From Asterias rubens (taxonomy: Eukaryota): 64,000 nt of DNA. The translations under genes and the position numbers were made by a program. Positions 31,366 to 53,367 of the stretch are shown here, piece after piece. Below the pieces are notes generated by a model. That model saw nothing but the letters and a program-made list of their open reading frames with translations, was not told the DNA's origin and made no database searches. Within the stretch, counting starts at the first letter, position 1. Each line of letters opens with the position of its first letter. The DNA lies in assembly GCF_902459465.1 (NCBI RefSeq), contig NC_047066.1:9796001-9860000 (forward strand). The letters run 5' to 3'.

Positions 31366-31613
31366 TTAAGTGGCCAACAGGGCTTATAAACTCTGGGTTT
31401 AACTTGCCCCATAACAAGTTGCATAGTTGCCCAGTTTTAAGTAGCTCACAGGGTAAGTTGAGAAGTGATGTTTACTAGCCCGTAGCAGTTTTGACTAGAA
31501 AATGTACGACGGGCTAGTGTTAAGGGCGAGCACTACTACTGTTGTACCAAACAACTCTCTGATTAAAAATTGATTGATTTTCTTTTTTAGCTAGACTTGC
31601 TAGGAGACTCAAG

Positions 31614-33518
31614 ATGGAGAATCTAGAAGTAGTAGTACTTGCAGGCAGCTCAGCCATTACTGGGATTATTGGCTACTACTTATGGAAGGAAGCAAAGTAT
31701 CTCGGCCATGTCAAGGTATTAAAGATAAGGGCAGGAATCATCTAGTCACAAATGTTGAGCGCTTAGTGGAAACACTTGCAAGTTTTGAAACAAGCAACTG
31801 CGACAGAAAAACTTGGCGGAATTTTATTTCTGAACATGGTGAAAGGGCAACTGGCCATTTTTATTTTGCAAAGGACACTTCCATTGGAAAATCTTAAAGT
31901 TAGTGAGAAACTTTTGAAGGGCATCGAGGCCAAGACCAGGGCAACAGGGGGCGAGCCCATGGCATCCGTGGCCAGTGTGTTATTCCAGATATAAGCAAAT
32001 TAAGAGGTTCTTTTTTTCTCTTTTTTTTCTCAAAAAATAATGTAAATACTTGCATATTATTTTAGTGAATTTTTTTTTTAAAGAGAACAACTTGATGGTT
32101 TTTTTTTTTTTTTTTTTTTTTCAGGATGCACCTCGTCTTACCATAGATCGTAACTTCAAAGCCATCGTTGATGAAGCCCCAAAGCACACAATACCGTACG
32201 CAGTCGTTGAGGGCAGTGTTGCCGCACTAGGTACACCACTCAAGAGTGAAAACGCATCAGGTCTTCTTGGGGTGATTCAGACATTAATCTGTAGAGAACA
32301 TAAAACTTACTGGAGTGGTAGCACTCGGTTGTGGTGAGTATTCATTATGATGATGCCAAATTTGCAAAAAATAGTCAATGGCCTGACATTTGACCCTAGC
32401 AGTGTCTAGTCTTTCTTGAAGGCTAAATGACAACACAGCACATACAAAAATGTTTGGCCATTACCTATTTTTGCGCTTAATACCATACCTTTTGGTTGGT
32501 AACCAGTTTGCAACACCAATTCTACTTTCTTGTTCATGCCAAATTTGCGTAAATTGTATTCATTTGATAATTTATTTAAATTGTTCTTTGACAGTAAGCA
32601 AAAGGCAATTTGTGCAATTTCTTCAAGACTAATTATTTCTTTGAACATTTCATTGAACCCAAGCAAACAATCTGGATGTTTTATCCATGAGAAGAAGATC
32701 AAATTTATTGTTTGAATCGATGGGTTGAAGTTGCAAATGCACAGGGTACTTAAATCAACTTCTAAAATTGTTTTTCCGCCATAATTATCTCTTACAGGCA
32801 TGACACCACACGGCTGATCAGAAACATATCCCACACGGTGCCATTTGAACTACGGGGCAACAAGGCAAGTGTAAAGGTCGATGACCCCCTCTCAGCCGTC
32901 GGACTTGAAATTCCCATCGTCCACGACTCCTTTGAGCCCTCCTCTACATCTCTGGGTGAACACATTGTCAGCTGGGCCAGCGGGGAAAAAACAAAAGGCT
33001 TCCAAACAATGGAGAGAATGCTCTCGGAGGGGACGGTTCTTACGGGTGTCGGAATGATCTCAACATCAACTGGTACCTTGATGCTTGGTCCCCCTGCTAC
33101 CTCGGATAGACTCTACATCCTAGGAAGGACTGGCTTTAGCGGTGTTGTAAGAGACTTACAGTCCAAGTTGAACCAGCTCAGGTTTATGCTGTATGTTAGC
33201 GGGTCTATCACGGCGTTGCTGTCTGCCTTGTGGGCGTACAGGTGGTACAAGCAGTACTGCGAGAAGGTTGCTCACGAAATGCAAGTGGAGAGAGTGCTTC
33301 AGAACCGGGCCCAGGACGATAACGAAGGGACCAATATCGATCAAGAGATCAATGAAGACAACACGTGCACGATTTGTCTAACCAATCGGAGGGATGTGGT
33401 GCTGCTGGAATGCGGGCACATCTGCACGTGTGCGCGGTGTGCGAGATTACTACAACCTCCACAGTGCCCAATATGTAGGCAACGTGTCAAACGTGTTGTA
33501 CCACTTTTTAATGCGTAG
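31614..33518 (+). CDS. MUL1: Mitochondrial E3 ubiquitin ligase MUL1/MAPL. Exons: 31614..31715, 32125..32333, 32798..33518
   Basis: N-terminal TM segment, GIDE-type region (PYAVVEGSV, FQTMERMLSEGTVLTGVG), second TM segment, C-terminal C3HC4 RING (CTIC...CGHICTCARC...CPICRQ). Confidence 0.93.
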
Positions 33519-39589: not shown

Positions 39590-42500
39590 ATGTTGCGGAA
39601 GATACTGCGATTGCGGTCTGCAATGTGCAATGTAGAGATTCGCAGGCTTTGTTCTTCTAATAACCGTCTAAATTCCAAGGTATAGGTTTCGTAAATATTC
39701 AACACTGAGGGCGCCCTATACAATGTTTGTTCTCATGACATTTTTGCAGAGCTGAATTGAAAATGTAAATGTCGTTTTCTACCTCCATGCTAGAAGAAGT
39801 AGAACTTACAAGAAGAACTCGTTACATTATAAATGCTTACCTAGTGCCTAATAAACTCCAATTACGACAGCCCTTTTTCCTTCCTCCAATTCCAAAGCTA
39901 CATATTCAATTCATCCTTTTTTTAATGAATTTTATTGCAAGTATCTGGCTGGTCAATATTATTAAATGTCTGACCTTTTATTTACAGATCAGATGAGAAA
40001 GGTTGACATATTTAACCTAGCTAGAGAAACACGCACATATTTTGAACCTACCTCCATCATGTCCACAACAATACGGTGTCAAATTCATGGAAATAAGACA
40101 TTTCTGGGTCTATGGTGCATTGACAATGCAACACAATGCAAAACAACATTTCATTGGTGCTCAAGGGAGTTCCGGTTCAATATACTGATAATGAGACTTA
40201 ACTTAAAAGGACATTTTATTGTTTTTTAAGGTCAATACCTATTACAAGCATTTTTATATTACTACCTACCACATCTTCATGGGAAATAAATTCCAACAAT
40301 CATTTAACAAGTTAATATAAAAATGCCTTTTTTTATAGAAAGTGGCAATGAGTTATGTAAATTTTGAATGTTGGCAACTTGGCATACATACAGTATTTAA
40401 TTTTTACCACATTGTTTATCATTCAATTTGTTTTTATTGATTGATTACATCTGTCATCTGAACTCTACAACACTATTCTAATAAAAAATTGTTTAATTTT
40501 GCACTTTTACTGTTCGAATTTTAATTAACAATAAAGACATTATATTCAATAGTTGTTGTTCTAAAGCTGTTCCATGACATAATCATCAGCAATGTGTCAT
40601 TGTGTTTTTATCTGACATTTAAAAAGTTGTCATTGTTAATAAATCTTTCGTGTAAAATTCAGATGTTTTCTTTATTTCGTCATCAGATACCTCCAAAGCC
40701 ACTGCCGACAAGAATCGACCCGAGTGATTTGCCAGAGGTACGTGTATGTACTACACATACAACAGTGGCTAACTTAACCGTCTAGAGCAAGGCTAGAATG
40801 TAACACTTGACTACCGGTCCCAGTCTACCAAATTTGTTTAAAACAGTTTACATTTTACACTCTGTAGAAAGTTCTGTCTCATTGAGATTCACACTTGTAA
40901 AAATAAATGTTGCGGTCCGATCAAATTATTGGGGTACAAGCCCTGCAGTTTTGTAGACCAGTGAATTGGTTTTCATACCCTGTTCGAACATGCACACAAA
41001 TCCTATACATAACATTTTTTTCACTGAACTTGACGATTGGTTATACATGTATGCTCTAGACTATGGCTATATCTTGAAAAATGAAGAAAATTATCATACT
41101 TTCCCGAAAACCAACAAGTACTTTTTTGTTTCTAAAGGAGACAATTGTCGATGAGAAGACAATACAACAACTAGAGAGACTTGCCCTGGTGAATTTCAAC
41201 AATACAGCAGGAATACAACAATTATCAGAGGCCATCAGATTAGCGGATCAAATCCGTACAGTCGACACAACTGGGGTTGAACCCATGGACTCCGTGCTGG
41301 AAGACAGGTAGTTGCCGCTGTGGCTTTTAAAAATTGTTTCTAAATTTGGAGACTTATATAGGCCATTAAGTACATATAAAATGTTTTCCCAATGTAATAA
41401 TACGACCGATCATATTATTTAGATAGAGGCGTGTTAAAAAAAAACATGGACTGGCATAATTCCATCACCAGTGCACACTCCAACCCCTCAGGCCAATGAG
41501 TGACCAGAAGAACATATTTTGGTCACTCACAATCCCAAAGAGGGAATAGACATGCTCAAGTGACCTCACCCCCAAACCATATGTGTATTATATTAGGGTT
41601 GTTTGTTTATTGCCTACCAAGATTTCCTGCTGGAGGTACTGGATTTGGCATTGAAAACCTCTTTAAAGAGAACACATCAAATAATCGTACACGTAGCATG
41701 TACATGCACATCAAGAAAAAAGCCAACAATACTTTTCATGTTTCCTGCAGTCAATATTTATTCAATTCACAAATACATGAGCATGTTATTAATCGAGACT
41801 TGTAATAGATCTGAGAACTCTTCAAATATTGCAGATTTGCACCTTTTAGTATGGACAAAGAACTAATTAAACACTTTCAGTCTACTGCTTTCTCTTCCTT
41901 ATAAGAATGCTGTATTTAAGAGACGATGACGTCACAGAGGGAAACTGTGCAGAGGAAGTTCTGAGAAATGCCGCCAAGACTTGCGAGGAATCCTTTGTGG
42001 CACCGCCCGGTAGGTGTACTTTTCTTTTCCAAAGTTAATCATTCTGGCCAGAAATTAAGCCATGACCTCTCTATAGCCTTCGTCTTGAACCCCTCAAAAC
42101 ATTCCCAATGACTTGTACAGGGATGAGAGCCATTGCCCGACAAGGAATATTCAGAAACCAGGATCACAATTAGGGAAGGTATATTGAAATTATGGCTTCC
42201 CCACCTTATAGTAAGCCCTGTGGCTAAACCGTTTAGATTTTACAGATATTTTTATGAACCGTGTCCTCGGCTCTGAAAGTACATGTACATGTAGATCAAA
42301 GACTAGAGCAGGATTTGTTTTATGTGGACAAAATAAAGGTTCATTTTCGTCACCGGGCTAACAATCCGGATTCAGATAAAAGTCTAAAATTTCTCATCCC
42401 TGCTTTGAAGACTTTCCAATGGCGTTGCCTTCAAGAAGATGAAATTCCAAGCCCAACAGTGGTTTGTTTTATCCAAGTTATGTTGTCCTTAGTTAGTTAA

Positions 42501-42597
42501 GGTCTTAACATTATTGAAACTTAATTAATTGCATTCTGCTTTTATTTCAGGGAATATCCCATTACCTTCAAAATCTGTGGCAAGCTTTGGTGACTAA
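39590..42597 (+). CDS. GATC: Glutamyl-tRNA(Gln) amidotransferase subunit C, mitochondrial. Exons: 39590..39679, 40687..40737, 41138..41307, 41906..42009, 42551..42597
   Basis: Arg-rich presequence-like exon 1; LERLALVNF...[25 protein letters not shown]|[20 protein letters not shown]...EESFVAPPG|NIPL. Confidence 0.92.
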
Positions 42598-44618: not shown

Positions 44619-45619
44619 ATTGTGGTTCGTGTTGTAAGAAAAGTTGGTGGAAAATGATAGCGCCCGCTTATGGGAAAATTGTGACAAATCAAAACGAGAT
44701 ATTGCACCAAAACTAAGTGGAGGCATCCAAGAACCTCTGGACCAAAGGTTGGAAACCAAGTCGGTTATGTAGCTTATTTAAGAAATTTAGTAAGGAAAAT
44801 CTATCAATTTCCTTCGCATCTCTGGTAACTGCCTTGATTGCCCCTTGATTCTTCCCCGTAAAAATGTAGATTTCCCTCATAATAGTACTACATTGCACTT
44901 ATAAAAGTTGGAAGGGCCTTTTAGCAATGAGATACAAGAACGTACAAGCCCGTACAAGAACCAAGTATTGGACCCAACTATCTCTCAATAATGGGATAGC
45001 ATCAATCGTTCAATATATTTTCGGATAAGTCACTTTAAAAAGAAAAAACAAAAAAGCAGTGAGACTTGAATTAAAGAACAAGAGTACATGTTATTAACAA
45101 TAAAAATTACCGCATTGAACTAAAAACAATATTGGAATTAAAGTAAATTGTCAGTTACACCATGAAGTTGAAAAATCACAAGACATACATCACCAAACAG
45201 AAAGAGACATGCTAGTCAATGCATTATACACGTACCCCACTGCAATCTAAAAATTGTAATAAAGTAGGTCTAAGAGAACATATCCCACATACATGTACAC
45301 CAAAATCTTGTGTGCACTTTTGAATAATAGAAAAGATTTTCTGGTGATATTTATTTACTTTTTTAGATACAGCGTCTCCTAAATAGATGGATAAAATACA
45401 AACACAGTTCTTTAAACAAAACAAAACGGAAGTTTTTTCTCACAGCCCCAAATATTCAAATTAGTCCCATTTAAGAAAAAGTGTACAAGTAGCCCATTAA
45501 GAAATGAATTTCAAGCACCCACCCCCACCCCCCACCCCCAAAAAAGAGAACACATTTTTAAATAGTGATATAATAATAAAAATAATGGTAACAAATAAAA
45601 AATAATTCAAACATAATTC

Positions 45620-45968
45620 AAACAATGCACAACAAACATTTATTTCAATCATACCATCAAATCCATCCACGATTCGTCCAAAACGCTTTTTGATCCTAAT
45701 CCATTGATCCAAATCCTTTGATCCAAATCCGGAATCCTGTGTTCCTGATCCAAATCCTGATCCAAATCCATGATCCTTTCATCCTGATCCGAAAATCCCT
45801 CCGTAGGATCCCTCATCCTAAATTTGGGTGCTCCATTTTTTTTTCTGAGCCATCTTTTCCTGATCCCGTCATGACAACAAAAATCCTTAAGAATCCGTTT
45901 CGTGGACTCCTTGAATTCCAACGATAATCCTAAGAAATCCCAATTTGTGAATGTCCATCCTTACGACA
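45620..45968 (-). other. SRSF1: Putative non-coding terminal exon of SRSF1/9 carrying a GGAU array (3' boundary approximate)
   Basis: Polypyrimidine acceptor TTTTTTTCAATATTCTCAG| at 45969/45968; 25 GGAT in 45661-45960; AATAAA at 45644-45639. Confidence 0.65.
45639..45644 (-). terminator. Polyadenylation signal AATAAA for SRSF1/9
   Basis: AATAAA on the minus strand followed by GT-rich sequence. Confidence 0.55.
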
Positions 45969-47624
45969 CTGAGAATATTGAAAAAAATACAAGATGTTAG
46001 ATACACTAAATATCTTAACTGGAGATCAATTGTTTGTCAGAATATTTACAATAAAAACACACCATATCTAAAAGTGCATGCAGCTTATGATGATTATTAC
46101 CAAATCCTCATAGCAGATTTTTGACATTTTCTCATGGACATATCATCATAATCAGAGTCGAACACTTTGAGTGAGTTCCCATATGGAGTTTTGTTTTTGT
46201 TTACAGCGAGAAATGACCCCCTTGGTAAACAACCCTTGGGGTCGATTTCACAGTGAGTTAGGCCTGACTTGGGACTAGTCCTAGGAGATATTAAAAACTT
46301 AAGGCTAGTTTTAACTCTTTGTGAAATCCCCCAAAGCTGGTTAAGGCACTGTTTATGCAATCAACGTGTGGTCATTAGATACATGTGCAGATATTTACTA
46401 AACAAAATCAATGGGATTTGCTGATTTTCCTGCCCAATACGGTTAAGAGATTCTTCAGGTGGTTAATGCAAAACATAATTGAAATGGAATTGTTTAATAT
46501 TTCTTGTTTCAATACTCGTGCACATAAGAAAGTCCTTTACCTGCAGTTTTATTATTGTGTTCCTAAATTACCACTCTAAACCACTTCATCAAAAGCAGCC
46601 CATGCATTTTTACAGCTGTTATTAAAATTATCAGATTATCAACATTTTTACTAAACACACAGGGAAGTTATCAATTCTGTATTCTTTTTGACAATTTCCA
46701 ACACCAACCAATAAAAAAACAAAAATCAACTCAAGCTTACAAAATATTATGGTAAAATATCAGCTAGAAAATATGCCAAAAACCACACATGTTTAAAACG
46801 CAATGTAAACCAGTTTTCTCAAGTTTACAACCCAACCTGGAACCAGGAGCAGTGAATCTTTTTAAGCCAAACCAATTTGAGATAAATGACTGGTCCCTCT
46901 TTGACATGATGAGAATAACTATTCATAAACTAAAAATGTCTACAAGATACTTCTCAAAACAGATGGTGCGTGATTATTGTCTAGTGAGTTAGCTTCTACA
47001 TGTTGGCACATTTAACAAACCATTTTTATAAGAATATTGAAGGAATATTTTAAAAACGTTTTCAGCAACCATATTAATTTATTCTTACTTATGCATTGTA
47101 CAAAAAACTTTGTGAAAAAAAACAATAAGTGATGACCATGGGGTGTAACAAATCAAAGAAATATCAAATAAAATGAAAAAAGGCATATCTTGAAAAGTCA
47201 AGTCAAACACTACAGCATAATAAAATGGCAACTACTTGAGGGGCAACTGTAAGTCTTTTATGGAAAGTTTGCGCAAATGTTTACGTACACAGTTCTGCTG
47301 ATTTCTTCAACAACGTAATATATTTTCTAAGTAAGAGAAAATTGTGCACAATAGCCAGGGTACAGCAGACAATTGGATGCCTTGTATTTTTCAGACTTCA
47401 TCTATAAGCATTATTGTAAGCACTCATACTCTAAACTTCTAGGTTAATGTTCTACATGTGGTAAAGTTCTTGGTTTTCTTCAAAAAACTTATTTTGTCAA
47501 ACCAACCTTGGTTTCCCAGTTGTTTCGCAAATTGCGAAGGAAAGAGTGAAGATAAGTCTTCCACTCCATTATAAGCTAAATCTATGCTCAGCCTGACATT
47601 CCCGGCCCACAGTCGTCCCTCACT

Positions 47625-50600
47625 TTAGCGAGAGTGTGAGCGACTGTGGGAGTGCCCTTTGGAGCGACTGGGACTGCGAGATCGGGACCTAGAGTATGAA
47701 CGCTTGTAGTGACGCTTTGGACTGTGGGAGCGTCGAGGACTTCGCTTCGGGCTGTAGTGTCGCTTGCTGATGGGAGAGCGACTTCGGGAACGACTGGAGC
47801 GGCTGTAGTCGGCCTTAACACGGATGTACGATTGATCACCCTGGAGTAAAAACAACACATTCGACAATCAGTGTTGGAGCCACGGTGGGCGGTGCTGGGC
47901 GGGCCTGCCCAGGACTCACAATTTTTGCCCAGCACTCTGAGAAAAATACATTATGCTGCCCAGCACAGATTTCAAATATTGTCAATTTTGCATTGATCTG
48001 AGACAGAGCTAATGATGAGGAGTGAGAAAGAACACAATCCAAAGGCCATTCAACTTATTGCATGGCCCCATATCACAAACAGTTTGGGAACCTGGCCCCA
48101 CTTCAGCAATAATGGCTCCATAATTTTTTTTATTCTTACATGTAATTATTAATTACATGTAAGAATACTTTTTTTGATCCCCTTGCCCTTCTAACAAATC
48201 TTGATTTATTGCCAACCACTAAAATTGGTCTAGCTACAACCCTGTCGACAATAGTTATAGAAAAGTCTTTTCAGACTACTAATTTACTATTAAAATCTAC
48301 CTACATGTACATGATGTTGATAAGGACTGCACTGGGATCAGTGTCAGGCATACCATAGATCATTATCAGAATCCAACAGTTTGGTTGCTGAAGAACCAGT
48401 AAACCACCAAGGGAGGTAGGACTTTTTGTACTCGGTTGAGTACCAGTAAAAAAAAATTTAGATGACTTTCCCAACAACAGAAACTCAGCAAAATTGTGGG
48501 CTGACATTTAGTCAAACAACCCACTTGATGCCATGAAGTTGATTTGAATATGCACTGCCGCTACTACTAGTAAATGGCCCAATTTCAAAGAGCTGTTTAA
48601 GCAGATTACAAATATAGCTAATAAATATAGCTAATTATCAAAAACGAGCAGGATACCACACACAGATGTGACATGGTGTTTTTACTGGTAAGGATACAAT
48701 CTTTTAAGCAAAATCACGCTATTCTTAGCTACTTTTTGAGCTGAAGCAGCTCTTTGAAACTGCGCCCAAACTGCGTGGAATCTAGGGCCGAGTGTTACAA
48801 TATTGGCCTTGATGACCTCCGTCCAAACAAAAAGTGGCTGAAATATATTACCTCATGAGAGCGAAACTTTGAATCATCTAAGGTCTTGACGGCATAGCGC
48901 ATGTCTTCCTCACTCACGTACTCTACTACACCGGTGCAATCTCGATGAACGTCGGCGTAGCAAACATCACCAGCTTCACGCATGTGGTCTTTCAGGTCCT
49001 GCCAGCTACCGGTGGAGGGGAGTCCTGGGCGAGGCAAATTTTTATCATGCAATCATTGAAGACATTTATGTATGTTATATGGAAAGGTTTGTGGTAACAC
49101 CATGTATTGACTATCTCTAAATGAATTGGGGTGGTTCTGAAAAGAACTGTCGGTTTCAACTCAACGTTTCGATCCGTATGCTCTAATTGCTCTAGTTTCA
49201 AATCCTACATTTATGTTAGTTTGATTTTGAAACTTTGAGGGTGAGAAAAACAATGTTGTATAAGGATGTTGAATGGCAGCATATACAGTGCTCCCCAATG
49301 GGTTGAAAATCCACAAGACCACAGAGCATATACATCAGATTTTTTGCTGGACCTGTAAATGATGTAGAATGGCAGCATACAGCGCTCGAATTTGGATTGA
49401 AAATCCATGAGACCACACGGAACTTGCAGCTCAGAATTTTTACTAGACCAGAATTTTGTCCTGGTCTTTAAAGTCATTTGTACATTGTATTGTGAAGCTG
49501 AAAGAATCATAACAAAAGTCTAGGATTCAAATTTCCAAGCATATTCAAACAGAAATCGAGCGTTGAAACGTATGAACTGCAAACGTGTGTCATCATAAGT
49601 GTTATCCAGAGTGAGAGGGGTGTCTGAGTGTTTTTTGGACACCCTGTTTTTAATCAGTGTAACAGACATTTTTAAATTGAATGCAAATTTTGACACCCTT
49701 CTACCAAATCCTGGCTAAAACCTCAGTCATCACAATGTATTTCAACAATTCAAGATTCTTGGCTGTGCTGAAAAAAGAAAAAAAAAAGGAATGACAAAAC
49801 ATCACTATTAGGAAAGTAATGATTGAACAGCTTTCCTTATACCTTACCTGACACGACACACCTGAAATGGGACCTCCTAGGTGGAGGACCGCCTCTCCTT
49901 CCACCTCCGCCTCCACCCCCACCTCCTCCTCCACCACCACCGCCCCCACTGTACCCGCCGCCGCCGCCCCTGGAGCCAGTATTACGAGGGCACTCGACAC
50001 GGAGTTGATAACCATCATAATCATAACCATTTCTGTAGTAAATAGCATCTTCTGCATCCCTGTTGAAAAATATATGTTTTTGTTATAAAGAAAAGACTCT
50101 ATAGAGAAAGACTCAGCTAGGGTCGAAACGTCAGGCCATTAACTATTTTTTGCAAAGAAAAGAGGGCTTAGACTAAATTAACGATAAGTTACAGAGCTGC
50201 GGCGATAACCATTAGCACACCTTGATTGATGAGCTGTAAATGGCTCTCTTTACAGCTCAACAAGGTGGGATACGATAACCGTATGCATATATAGCCAGTA
50301 GCCCTCGATCATTTCCCGCGCTGCGATGCTGATGGGCCAAATTTGGCTTATGTTGGTGTACATCAGATATTCTACATAAATTTTAAATAAAGCACTGTTC
50401 ATCATCATTACTTCTAGATTACTAGAAACTATGAGCCTTGGTACATCATCATTCATCGTACTGTGTAAAAATAACCACTGAATCAAAGGTAACGTCATCT
50501 GCATGAACCATCATAGAATGTAGTAACACTAGTCTGAAATGTTATTTGTTAGGTAACTATACTTTTTAATATAGGCCTACTTCACATTCACAATATTATT

Positions 50601-51065
50601 GAGTCGTTAAGTAAGCTTACCGTTGAAAATACAAAATTCACAGCATACAAAACAAACAAAAATCACAGCCAGAGAGGCAGTGTATTTGCCAATTTACTTT
50701 TCCATGATTTTACTTCTTCTTCTTTTTTATTATTAAGTAAGGAGTAAAAATAATGGTAAAAAAATGAATGGTTCAAAATAATAAAACTAAAGGCCAACCG
50801 ACCGAGTTTTAAAATAATAAAATACATAAAATGTATACCTTTTATCCTCGAACTCCACAAAGGCGAAAGGTGGTCCAACAGACTTGTTTTTCAAGTCAAT
50901 TTTGTTGATTCTACCATACTTGAAGAAGATGTCTTCGATGTCTTTGTCACGGATATCAGGAGGTAGATTACCGACGTAGATTCGGCCGTCTGTGGGACAA
51001 CCACTGTCACGGCCGCGCGATGAGCCTCCGCCACCACCACCACCACCTCGGCCGTAGTACGCCAT
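47625..51065 (-). CDS. SRSF1: SR splicing factor SF2/ASF, single co-ortholog of SRSF1/SRSF9. Exons: complement(50839..51065, 49848..50059, 48852..49024, 47625..47840)
   Basis: RRM1 ([17 protein letters not shown]), Gly linker, pseudo-RRM [27 protein letters not shown]|[10 protein letters not shown] domain. Confidence 0.95.
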
Positions 51066-53097: not shown

Positions 53098-53367
53098 ATG
53101 TCTGAACGCAAAGCAGTAGTCAAGAATGCCGACATGGCCGAAGATATCCAGCAAGACGCCATTGAGTGCGCAACCCAAGCCATGGAGAAGTTCAACGTGG
53201 AAAAGGACATTGCCGCCTACATCAAGAAGGAGTTTGACCGGAAGTACAACCCCACCTGGCATTGCATCGTGGGTAGAAACTTTGGCAGCTACGTCACTCA
53301 CGAAACCAAGCACTTCATCTACTTTTACCTTGGCCAGGTTGCCGTGTTGTTGTTCAAGTCTGGATAG
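53098..53367 (+). CDS. DYNLL2: Dynein light chain LC8 (co-ortholog of DYNLL1/DYNLL2), uninterrupted CDS
   Basis: 89 aa, [46 protein letters not shown]. Confidence 0.97.

Follow-up and report, generated by a model that had tools for sequence, protein, structure and literature searches.

A retained 3'UTR intron with conserved ends in the sea-star SRSF1/9 gene and its possible part in autoregulation

The SRSF1/9 gene and its 3' region

The gene analyzed here lies on the minus strand of the Asterias rubens contig NC_047066.1, within a window of 64,000 nucleotides (the whole stretch from 9,796,001 to 9,860,000) to which all positions below refer. Joining its coding exons (Table 1) yields an 831-nt open reading frame for a protein of 276 amino acids. 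The translation contains an RRM, a pseudo-RRM with the SWQDLKDH motif and an RS tail and is thus that of an SR protein of the SRSF1/9 type; the best matches in protein searches carry the names SRSF1, 1A, 1B or 1/9. The N-terminus encoded by exon 1 agrees with that of the Patiria protein P0308, and intron 3 (47841-48851) is spliced out in RNA contigs of four runs (X2 rec12, X3 rec16, X1 rec6 and X5 rec24). With DYNLL and GatC as neighbors, the position of the starfish gene resembles that of SRSF9 rather than that of SRSF1. Searches of the Asterias genome by DNA and by the exon 3 protein detected no second SRSF1/9 copy. Two proteins that are 90% identical to exon 3 (P0006 and P0007) come only from Tara metagenome contigs, which are 0.5-0.7 kb long and lack the 3' flank.

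Table 1. Features of the Asterias SRSF1/9 locus (window positions)
Feature	Positions	Strand	Basis
Coding exon 1 (ATG at 51065; first part of RRM1)	50839..51065	-	boundary inferred from reading frame and homology, no RNA
Coding exon 2 (end of RRM1, Gly-rich linker)	49848..50059	-	reading frame and homology
Coding exon 3 (pseudo-RRM, SWQDLKDH)	48852..49027	-	translation; RNA contigs of 4 runs join 48852 to 47840
Coding exon 4 (RS domain), stop TAA 47627-47625	47625..47840	-	sequence, RNA contigs
Candidate donor A, AAA/GTGAGG, intron G at 47623, probably unused	47618..47626	-	sequence; 7.7 bits
3'UTR segment from stop to donor B, 118 nt, 5 GGA	47507..47624	-	sequence
Conserved donor B block GGAAACCAAG/GTTGGTTT, junction 47507/47506	47499..47516	-	cross-species alignment
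Optional 3'UTR intron, 1538 nt, kept in the main mRNA	45969..47506	-	RNA contig coverage
High-copy repeat within the optional intron; assemblies break there	46189..46442	.	word depth
Branch point CTAAC (46000-45996), pyrimidine tract, acceptor AG (45970-45969)	45969..46000	-	sequence and alignment
GGAU-rich non-coding exon, 25 GGAT, 33 GGA, AATAAA 45644-45639	45620..45968	-	motif counts; 3' end uncertain

The non-coding exon at the far end of this region is dominated by an array of GGAU motifs, the 349 nt of the exon containing 25 GGAT while the window averages 1.0 per 350 nt. The array begins 8 nt past the acceptor and stops 20 nt short of AATAAA; because RNA contigs also cover 45300-45530, the true 3' end of the exon is uncertain. 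GGAU arrays downstream of the gene are present as well in two acorn worms, a crinoid, three sea stars and a shark. In human SRSF1, the SWQDLKDH helix of the pseudo-RRM binds GGA (PMC7813835) and, by analogy with the human protein, starfish SRSF1/9 is assumed to bind GGAU.

Splice signals in the 3'UTR and their conservation

The sequence-only reading of this locus had placed two donors and one acceptor in the 3'UTR, and all three motifs are indeed present on the minus strand. The base directly after the stop TAA is an A (47624), and the intron that would start at donor A begins with the next base. Donor B (CAAG/GTTGGT) has its intron G at 47506, 118 nt past the stop (47624-47507), and the acceptor (ctaacatcttgtatttttttcaatattctcAG/TGTCG, AG at 45970-45969) opens an exon at 45968. 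Among the 116 AG sites of the 3' region, this acceptor alone combines a pyrimidine tract, a YAG, an AG-free zone and a branch point consensus CTAAC at -27. The donors are less distinctive. When the 104 GT sites from the stop to the acceptor were scored with a rough textbook matrix of 5' splice sites, donor A ranked second (7.7 bits) and donor B fifth (5.7 bits). The donor of exon 2 (CAG/GTAAGG) reaches 12.2 bits but the real donors of introns 1 and 3 only 4.3 and 6.1 bits, so that sequence alone singles out neither A nor B.

Comparison of five loci from three sea stars (Asterias, both copies in Patiria and both in Acanthaster) sets the two donors apart. The core AAG/GTTGGT of donor B is invariant in all five, including Acanthaster copy 1, and identity across the surrounding block amounts to 18/18 in Patiria copy 1, 20/22 in Patiria copy 2 and 19/20 in Acanthaster copy 2. 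The branch point, the pyrimidine tract, the CTCAG/TG acceptor and the GGAU exon are likewise conserved, with a CTAAC-type branch point 27-30 nt ahead of the pyrimidine tract and the invariant CTCAG; Patiria copy 1 has exactly the same acceptor end, TTTCAATATTCTCAG/TGTCG, and the GGAU exon is 74.6-79% identical to its counterparts in the four other loci over 105-150 nt. In four loci for which GGA motifs were counted, the segment from the stop to donor B contains four or five of them.

When the 3' non-coding DNA of Asterias was compared with that of Patiria copy 1, the significant matches were the donor block and several blocks inside the region formed by acceptor and exon (E = 4e-15 and 3e-10, plus shorter blocks), and the same pattern recurred for Patiria copy 2 and for Acanthaster copies 2 and 1. 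The exact words shared, 18 and 20 nt long, were longer than the longest word in each of 300 dinucleotide shuffles, which never exceeded 17 nt (mode 11). A single run of G bases was also matched between Asterias and Patiria copy 1. The length of the intron varies among the loci from 1041 to about 2380 nt, and its interior cannot be aligned between Asterias and either Patiria or Acanthaster. Conserved ends around an unalignable interior of variable length are the pattern expected of intron ends and, judging from this alignment, donor B is very probably a real splice site. No other non-coding DNA of the locus is conserved as well as these two ends, whose similarity spans two sea-star orders and a gene duplication.

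The distance from the stop to the donor B junction is 118, 107, 96, 90 and 79 nt in the five loci, that is, above 55 nt in every one. At the sequence level, the splice sites in each of them define a 3'UTR intron whose 5' junction would lie more than 50-55 nt past the stop, which bears out the earlier proposal that a stop-distant donor pairs with the acceptor in front of the GGAU exon.

Outside sea stars, a search near the stop in amphioxus and shark did not find the donor B block, and BLAST detected no homology in the crinoid; acorn worms have a doubtful GCCAA(G/C)..GTTG about 20 nt after the stop. A hairpin that would hide donor B (AAACCA-AGGU-UGGUUU) was considered and rejected, being the minimum-energy fold in only two of four loci, with z-scores from -2.3 to 0.

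Intron retention in RNA and the status of donor A

The RNA contigs that contain the junction of exons 3 and 4, from four runs, continue unbroken past the stop, donor A and donor B, and other contigs span the acceptor unspliced. The unbroken spans are 46288-47839 (X3 rec16), 46237-47839 (X5 rec24), 46674-47839 (X2 rec12) and 45799-46807 (X1 rec3). Because these contigs run through both donors and the acceptor, the main mRNA retains the whole 3'UTR of about 2 kb. The word shares of X2 and X3 likewise indicate RNA with the 3'UTR intron kept, being low in the coding region (0.20, exons only) and high over 45400-48000 (0.72 and 0.61). The retained form predominates in poly(A) RNA from adults, from relative species and from plankton. 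Thus, the optional intron is retained by default, and the mRNA with the long 3'UTR is the main form. The sequence-only reading had counted this form as stable, and its predominance fits the logic of human SRSF1 (PMC9262138).

Neither of the two candidate junctions, 47507>45968 and 47624>45968, is among the joints listed for the contigs of the four RNA runs; the list comprises the strongest joints, with six weaker ones outside it, and contigs drop rare forms. As the contigs do not branch at 47506 or at 45968, these samples can contain the spliced form as a minor species at most. The junction pattern GGARACYAAGTGYCGTAAGGA gave 0 matches in JGI metagenome contigs, and a control pattern for the exon start was matched only twice, both times by chance in bacterial sequence; as no sea-star copy is present in the collection, the absence of junction matches from it is uninformative. 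A twofold higher contig depth over 45567-46286 in X2 and X3 was discarded as a sign of splicing, given the lack of a branch at 45968 and a depth that cannot be ranked. Inside the intron, the word depth of the high-copy repeat is 868-21089 in X2, X3 and X5 (lowest, 868.2, in the bin 46316-46442 of X2) compared to about 30-535 alongside, and many loose contig ends fall at 46263-46333, within the repeat.

That the unspliced form alone is seen in the contigs would also be expected if the region were never spliced. The conserved blocks and the GGAU array would then be binding sites in the 3'UTR, and feedback would operate without removal of an intron: SRSF1/9 bound far past the stop might recruit UPF1 directly or control translation, export or the choice of poly(A) site. 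Human SRSF1 is reported to regulate itself at several layers beyond splicing (PMC7764535), and the same review also cites a paper on the stimulation of NMD by SRSF1 (Aznarez 2018). Nevertheless, the conserved pieces are built like the ends of an intron (the invariant GT in AAG/GTTGGT, the branch point, the tract and the CTCAG), and a plain binding site would have no need for all the parts of a splice unit, in order, around unconserved DNA of variable length. We consider it unlikely that the region is never spliced and acts through such binding.

Donor A presents a different picture. Under the sequence-only reading, splicing at A would give an NMD-immune mRNA and splicing at B an NMD-sensitive one, with rising SRSF1/9 shifting the choice to B, the donor nearer the acceptor. 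There is something to commend this scheme: donor A fits the consensus well and outscores two real donors of the gene, it lies upstream of B, the only good acceptor is common to both, and SF2/ASF classically prefers the proximal donor. Against it, donor A falls in Asterias-only sequence for which the other loci offer no aligned counterpart, and the best donor within 50 nt past the stop in those four reaches at most 3.8 bits. Four RNA contig sets read through A, and its junction is missing from the listed joints, although an NMD-immune product should accumulate and assemble. The premise that A confers immunity is itself weakened, because some stop-proximal 3'UTR introns of vertebrates, a class enriched in genes for RNA-binding proteins, still lead to NMD (10.1101/677666). 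Donor A would make an intron of this kind, 1 nt past the stop in the gene of an RNA-binding protein; but the vertebrate introns are annotated, used and conserved, whereas donor A lacks conservation and no splicing from it is seen.

We therefore regard competition between A and B, decided by the proximal preference of SRSF, as very unlikely; most likely, donor A is a cryptic site that is due to chance or specific to its lineage. Equally improbable, in our view, is a variant in which Asterias added a strong donor A to an ancestral weak B and thereby acquired three states (a stable mRNA with the long UTR, another stable one with a short UTR if A is used, and an unstable one if B is used) among which the level of SRSF1/9 would pick. 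From the alignments, the conserved design appears to be a two-way choice, with the intron either kept or spliced at B. The sequence-only reading is thus supported in part, and its on/off switch between two donors, tempting as a refinement, is unsupported.

A possible feedback loop and its relation to known SR genes

SR factors limit their own level by unproductive splicing and, for SRSF1, a case that operates through a 3'UTR intron has been shown in mammalian cells. Against this background, we lean, with somewhat more confidence than doubt, towards a model in which the sea-star intron is kept by default and an excess of SRSF1/9 leads to its removal, to NMD and so to negative feedback. Under this model, the optional intron would lie wholly in the 3'UTR, extending from the weak but conserved donor B (AAG/GUUGGU, 47506) to the acceptor at 45969, and as long as it stays in place the mRNA with a 3'UTR of about 2 kb would be the main protein-producing form. 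Abundant SRSF1/9 would load onto the GGA motifs just before donor B and onto the GGA(U) array that follows the acceptor, and would help U2AF and U1 to recognize two otherwise poor sites, whereupon the intron would be taken out. The spliced junction, 118 nt past the stop in Asterias and 79-118 nt across the five loci, would then mark the mRNA for NMD and close a negative feedback loop as in human SRSF1. We infer splicing at donor B, the role of SRSF1/9 as its driver and the status of the product as an NMD target. Points against the model include the absence of the B junction from the listed joints, contigs without a branch at either end of the intron, and a donor block that was not found near the stop in amphioxus or in shark and is doubtful in acorn worms.

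Splicing at B might also have an outcome other than decay. The same conservation evidence applies, and removal of the intron would shorten the 3'UTR from 2 kb to about 0.45 kb and discard the high-copy repeat together with three extra poly(A) signals (47083, 46553 and 46498), which may stabilize the mRNA or aid its translation or export, for example in certain tissues or stages; or else NMD may sense the length of the 3'UTR. Neither EJC-dependent NMD nor the 50-55 nt rule is known from echinoderms, a further point against the decay model, and junctions have little influence on NMD in flies, worms and yeast. However, given its predominance in poly(A) RNA, the retained form is not obviously unstable, and a distance of more than 55 nt between stop and donor, seen in five of five loci, is not required under this alternative. 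Furthermore, stabilization driven by SRSF would amount to positive feedback, unlike every SR gene studied (PMC7764535). On balance, we deem an outcome of this kind unlikely, and the model of decay and negative feedback remains the one that we prefer.

If confirmed, this model would imply that feedback of the SRSF1 type is old in deuterostomes. It would also become testable in Patiria, a laboratory embryo model, on a simple cis-layout that consists of a weak donor, an exon with a GGA array and a fixed distance from the stop.

Among the known systems, SRSF2 (SC35) offers a partial parallel in that splicing in its 3'UTR destabilizes its own mRNA (Sureau et al. 2001, as cited in PMC9262138 and PMC7764535). 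For the starfish, too, we propose an SR protein whose promotion of splicing in its own 3'UTR would lower the stability of its mRNA; unlike the starfish gene, SRSF2 belongs to a different SR subfamily, with a single RRM, and also uses a poison cassette exon. A comparative paper (PMC4379411) treats SRSF4, SRSF5 and SRSF6, mentions SRSF1 once as background and does not include SRSF9.

The closest counterpart is human SRSF1 (SF2/ASF), whose self-regulation through a 3'UTR intron was reported by Sun et al. 2010, according to PMC9262138 and PMC7764535. Its productive isoform retains the intron, and excess SRSF1 drives removal, giving rise to unproductive forms (PMC9262138; PMC7764535, table 1). The two systems differ in several respects: splicing, NMD sensitivity and dependence on the SRSF level are shown in human cells and inferred in the starfish; the exon that follows the starfish intron consists of a dense GGAU array, not of an ultraconserved element; and the starfish gene has SRSF9-like neighbors (DYNLL, GatC). 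A search of the shark found no vertebrate homology of the starfish intron ends. The likeness lies in the layout. The starfish protein, a member of the same gene family, has the RRM, the pseudo-RRM with SWQDLKD and the RS domain; among the non-coding parts of the locus, the alternative region is conserved best; the intron lies wholly in the 3'UTR and its removal would set a junction well over 55 nt past the stop; and, as in human SRSF1, the main, productive mRNA of the sea-star gene keeps that intron.

The SRSF1/9 gene and its candidate 3'UTR splice sites

The four coding exons (Table) join in frame to encode a 276-amino-acid SR protein in which an RRM is followed by a Gly-rich linker, a pseudo-RRM bearing SWQDLKDH and finally an RS tail. 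Protein searches returned top matches named SRSF1, 1A, 1B or 1/9, and the nearest full-length protein found, P0308 of the sea star Patiria miniata, has the same N-terminus as the Asterias product. The Asterias genome search yielded a single SRSF1/9 copy, which sits between DYNLL and GatC (window 31600-53364), and the order DYNLL-SRSF-GatC recurs in one crinoid and two acorn worms. Valvatid sea stars carry two copies (Patiria L005, L008; Acanthaster L007, L014), both of which retain the donor B block and the GGAU exon described below; on one Acanthaster scaffold the copies face each other across GatC (MUL1 > copy 2 > < GatC < copy 1, DYNLL). A search between MUL1 and GatC in Asterias found no remnant of a second copy. 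In several fish gene models (P0165, P0171, P0194, P0200, P0074) SRSF1 is fused to a dynein light chain domain (PF01221), apparently through annotation read-through echoing the old SRSF-DYNLL neighbourhood seen in the window.

Table. Features of the SRSF1/9 locus and RNA contigs placed on it (window positions; a slash marks the splice boundary)
Feature	Position	Strand	Remark
Coding exon 1	51065-50839	minus	
Coding exon 2	50059-49848	minus	
Coding exon 3	49027-48852	minus	
Coding exon 4	47840-47625	minus	
Stop TAA	47627-47625	minus	
Donor A, AAA/GTGAGG	intron start 47623	minus	
Donor B, CAAG/GTTGGT	intron start 47506	minus	118 nt past stop
Acceptor AG	45970-45969	minus	exon from 45968
DYNLL	53098-53364		upstream of SRSF1/9
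GatC	~39590-42590		downstream of SRSF1/9
MUL1	31600-33518		downstream of SRSF1/9
Read-through contig X3 rec16	reaches 46288		
Read-through contig X5 rec24	reaches 46237		
Read-through contig X2 rec12	reaches 46674		
Read-through contig X1 rec6	reaches 47460		
Unbroken contig over acceptor, X3 rec15	45567-46286		
Unbroken contig over acceptor, X2 rec9	45591-46296		
Unbroken contig over acceptor, X5 rec23	45653-46261		
Unbroken contig over acceptor, X1 rec3	45799-46807		

On the minus strand of the window, the stop, both donors and the acceptor lie exactly where the sequence-only reading had placed them. Scored with a rough consensus matrix, donor A (7.7 bits) and donor B (5.7 bits) rank second and fifth among the 104 GT sites in the region, and their use is therefore unprovable from sequence alone. 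The acceptor is the sole AG in the 3' region that combines a pyrimidine tract, YAG, an AG-free zone and a CTAAC branch point at -27. Behind it lies the non-coding GGAU exon, whose 349 nt hold 25 GGAT and 33 GGA, where the window averages 1.0 GGAT per 350 nt; the array starts 8 nt past the acceptor and ends 20 nt ahead of AATAAA at 45644-45639, and just two GGAT occur within the 1.5 kb preceding it.

Conservation of the probable intron ends

Protein searches provided orthologous loci from sea stars (Patiria miniata copy 1, L005, and copy 2, L008; Acanthaster planci copy 2, L007, and copy 1, L014), the crinoid Anneissia (L006), the acorn worms Glandiceps (L004) and Ptychodera (L013), amphioxus (L015) and shark (L016). 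When the 3' non-coding sequence of Asterias is compared with that of Patiria copy 1, significant matches are confined to two islands, besides one matching G run. The first, GGAAACCAAG/GTTGGTTT, spans donor B and is identical at 18 of 18 positions (Asterias 47516-47499); the second consists of several blocks that extend from the branch point through TTTCAATATTCTCAG/TGTCG to the 3' end of the GGAU exon, the two largest with E = 4e-15 and 3e-10. Both islands were found again in Patiria copy 2 and Acanthaster copy 2 (alignments A5, A6), and Acanthaster copy 1 has them too, with GACAAAG/GTTGGTCT as its donor. Exact words of 18 and 20 nt are shared, longer than in any of 300 dinucleotide shuffles (maximum 17, mode 11). 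Nothing aligns between the islands, and the length there ranges from 1041 to ~2380 nt.

As read from these alignments, a weak donor whose GT never varies, a branch point and pyrimidine tract followed by an invariant CAG, and a free interior are the footprint of a real intron, and donor B and the acceptor are very probably genuine splice sites. That the islands are instead 3'UTR binding sites conserved with no splicing at all, a reading that the unspliced contigs described below would suit and the intron-like footprint would not, is improbable. Because donor B is conserved yet weak, its splicing may well be regulated. The sequence similarity of donor B is established within sea stars; a BLAST search of the crinoid locus and the stretch near the stop in amphioxus and shark gave no counterpart, and any resemblance in acorn worms is doubtful.

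The donor B block (47499-47516 and its equivalents in L005, L007 and L008) is a near-palindrome, AAACCA AGGU UGGUUU, and a small hairpin formed by it could mask the 5' splice site; the two substitutions observed (A>G, C>U) would preserve pairing via G-U. This hairpin is the minimum-energy structure in just two of the four loci and does not reach significance when compared with shuffled sequence.

GGAU arrays 3' of the SRSF gene are also present in sea stars, crinoid, acorn worms and shark. The sea-star (window 45743-45767), crinoid (L006 15033-15047) and acorn-worm (L004 14180-14193) arrays share an identical unit of 13-15 nt, (A)UUGGAUCAGGAUU, and are otherwise unalignable. The two acorn worms have a consensus donor, GTGAG/GTAAGC, in a stretch with 33 of 34 positions identical (L013 14554-14587; L004 13629-13662), ~200 nt upstream of the GGAU exon, and a second conserved exon-like block farther upstream (L013 13577-13736; L004 13167-13328); their GGAU exon has its 3' end at CAGG/GTAAAT. 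Given this donor, block and exon end, the acorn-worm 3'UTR seems to hold cassette-type non-coding exons and not just a plain terminal exon.

Retention of the 3'UTR in RNA contigs

Four RNA contig sets were placed on 45300-49100: X2 and X3 come from the same organism as the window, X1 is a poly(A) plankton metatranscriptome and X5 a related species. X2 and X3 contain 0.20 of sampled coding-region words, the share of exons, and 0.72 and 0.61, respectively, of the words in 45400-48000; the sets are therefore RNA, with the proposed 3'UTR intron included. Intron 3 (47841-48851) is spliced out in all four runs, and contigs from which it is removed continue unbroken out of exon 4 past the stop and both donors, again in all four. 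The joints listed for the four runs, all but six weaker ones, include neither 47624>45968 nor 47507>45968; the contigs are assemblies, in which rare variants are dropped and from which strand and abundance are unreadable. The main processed mRNA keeps the entire 3'UTR, and a spliced form, if any, is minor in X1, X2, X3 and X5.

The sole assembly break is a high-copy repeat at ~46260-46330. RNA contig word depth reaches 868-21089 at 46189-46442 within the 3'UTR intron, and 59-1079 at 47840-48100 and 220-2059 at 48729-48855, all with many loose ends; these stretches, in that intron and in intron 3, are expressed high-copy repeats. The repeat at 46189-46442 interrupts every assembly of the SRSF1/9 mRNA save X1 rec3, which crosses it whole. 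All four runs also cover 45300-45530, downstream of AATAAA 45644-45639 and past a G-rich tract (45518-45540), reflecting either a longer SRSF1/9 3'UTR (next AATAAA 45355) or a convergent GatC transcript reaching in. The Acanthaster copy 1 protein P0357 is one sequence under two NCBI accessions (XP_022089579.1, XP_022089580.1), hence two annotated transcripts that share their coding sequence, a pattern consistent with alternative splicing in the UTR.

Donor choice and a possible feedback loop

The sequence-only reading had proposed that the SRSF level chooses between donors A and B as an NMD on/off switch. Of its two donors, B is conserved more than 55 nt past the stop in five sea-star loci (118, 107, 96, 90 and 79 nt), whereas A is confined to Asterias: no usable donor lies within 50 nt of the stop in the four other loci (best 0.5 to 3.8 bits vs 7.7), and in alignment A5 donor A falls inside ~45 nt that match nothing, a weakly aligned stretch. 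By the usual rule, a junction 1 nt past the stop escapes NMD, so that the donor-A product should accumulate; despite this expectation, it is absent among the listed joints in all four runs. In vertebrates, the NMD immunity of stop-proximal 3'UTR introns is unreliable (10.1101/677666). On these grounds we consider the two-donor switch very unlikely.

In human SRSF1, a 3'UTR intron is kept in the productive isoform, and surplus SRSF1 forces its removal, giving unproductive forms (PMC9262138; PMC7764535); GGA is bound by the pseudo-RRM SWQDLKD helix (PMC7813835). The starfish layout fits this loop. Retention of the intron is the default state, and the GGA motifs, which lie directly ahead of the weak donor and crowd the exon after the acceptor, would be the SRSF1/9 contact sites; removal would then place a junction, held more than 55 nt past the stop, where it could trigger NMD, as in human SRSF1. 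We infer splicing, SRSF dependence and NMD at the starfish gene. Alternatively, the intron might be spliced out and the 3'UTR shortened with no decay, an outcome we regard as unlikely, if slightly less so than the absence of splicing, given a junction so held; to our knowledge, junction-dependent NMD is untested in echinoderms.

A comparative study (PMC4379411) concerns SRSF4, SRSF5 and SRSF6 and names SRSF1 once, as background only. The starfish 3'UTR intron, a device of like working, probably belongs to SRSF1-type unproductive splicing, with a putative spliced RNA, putative NMD sensitivity and putative self-regulation.
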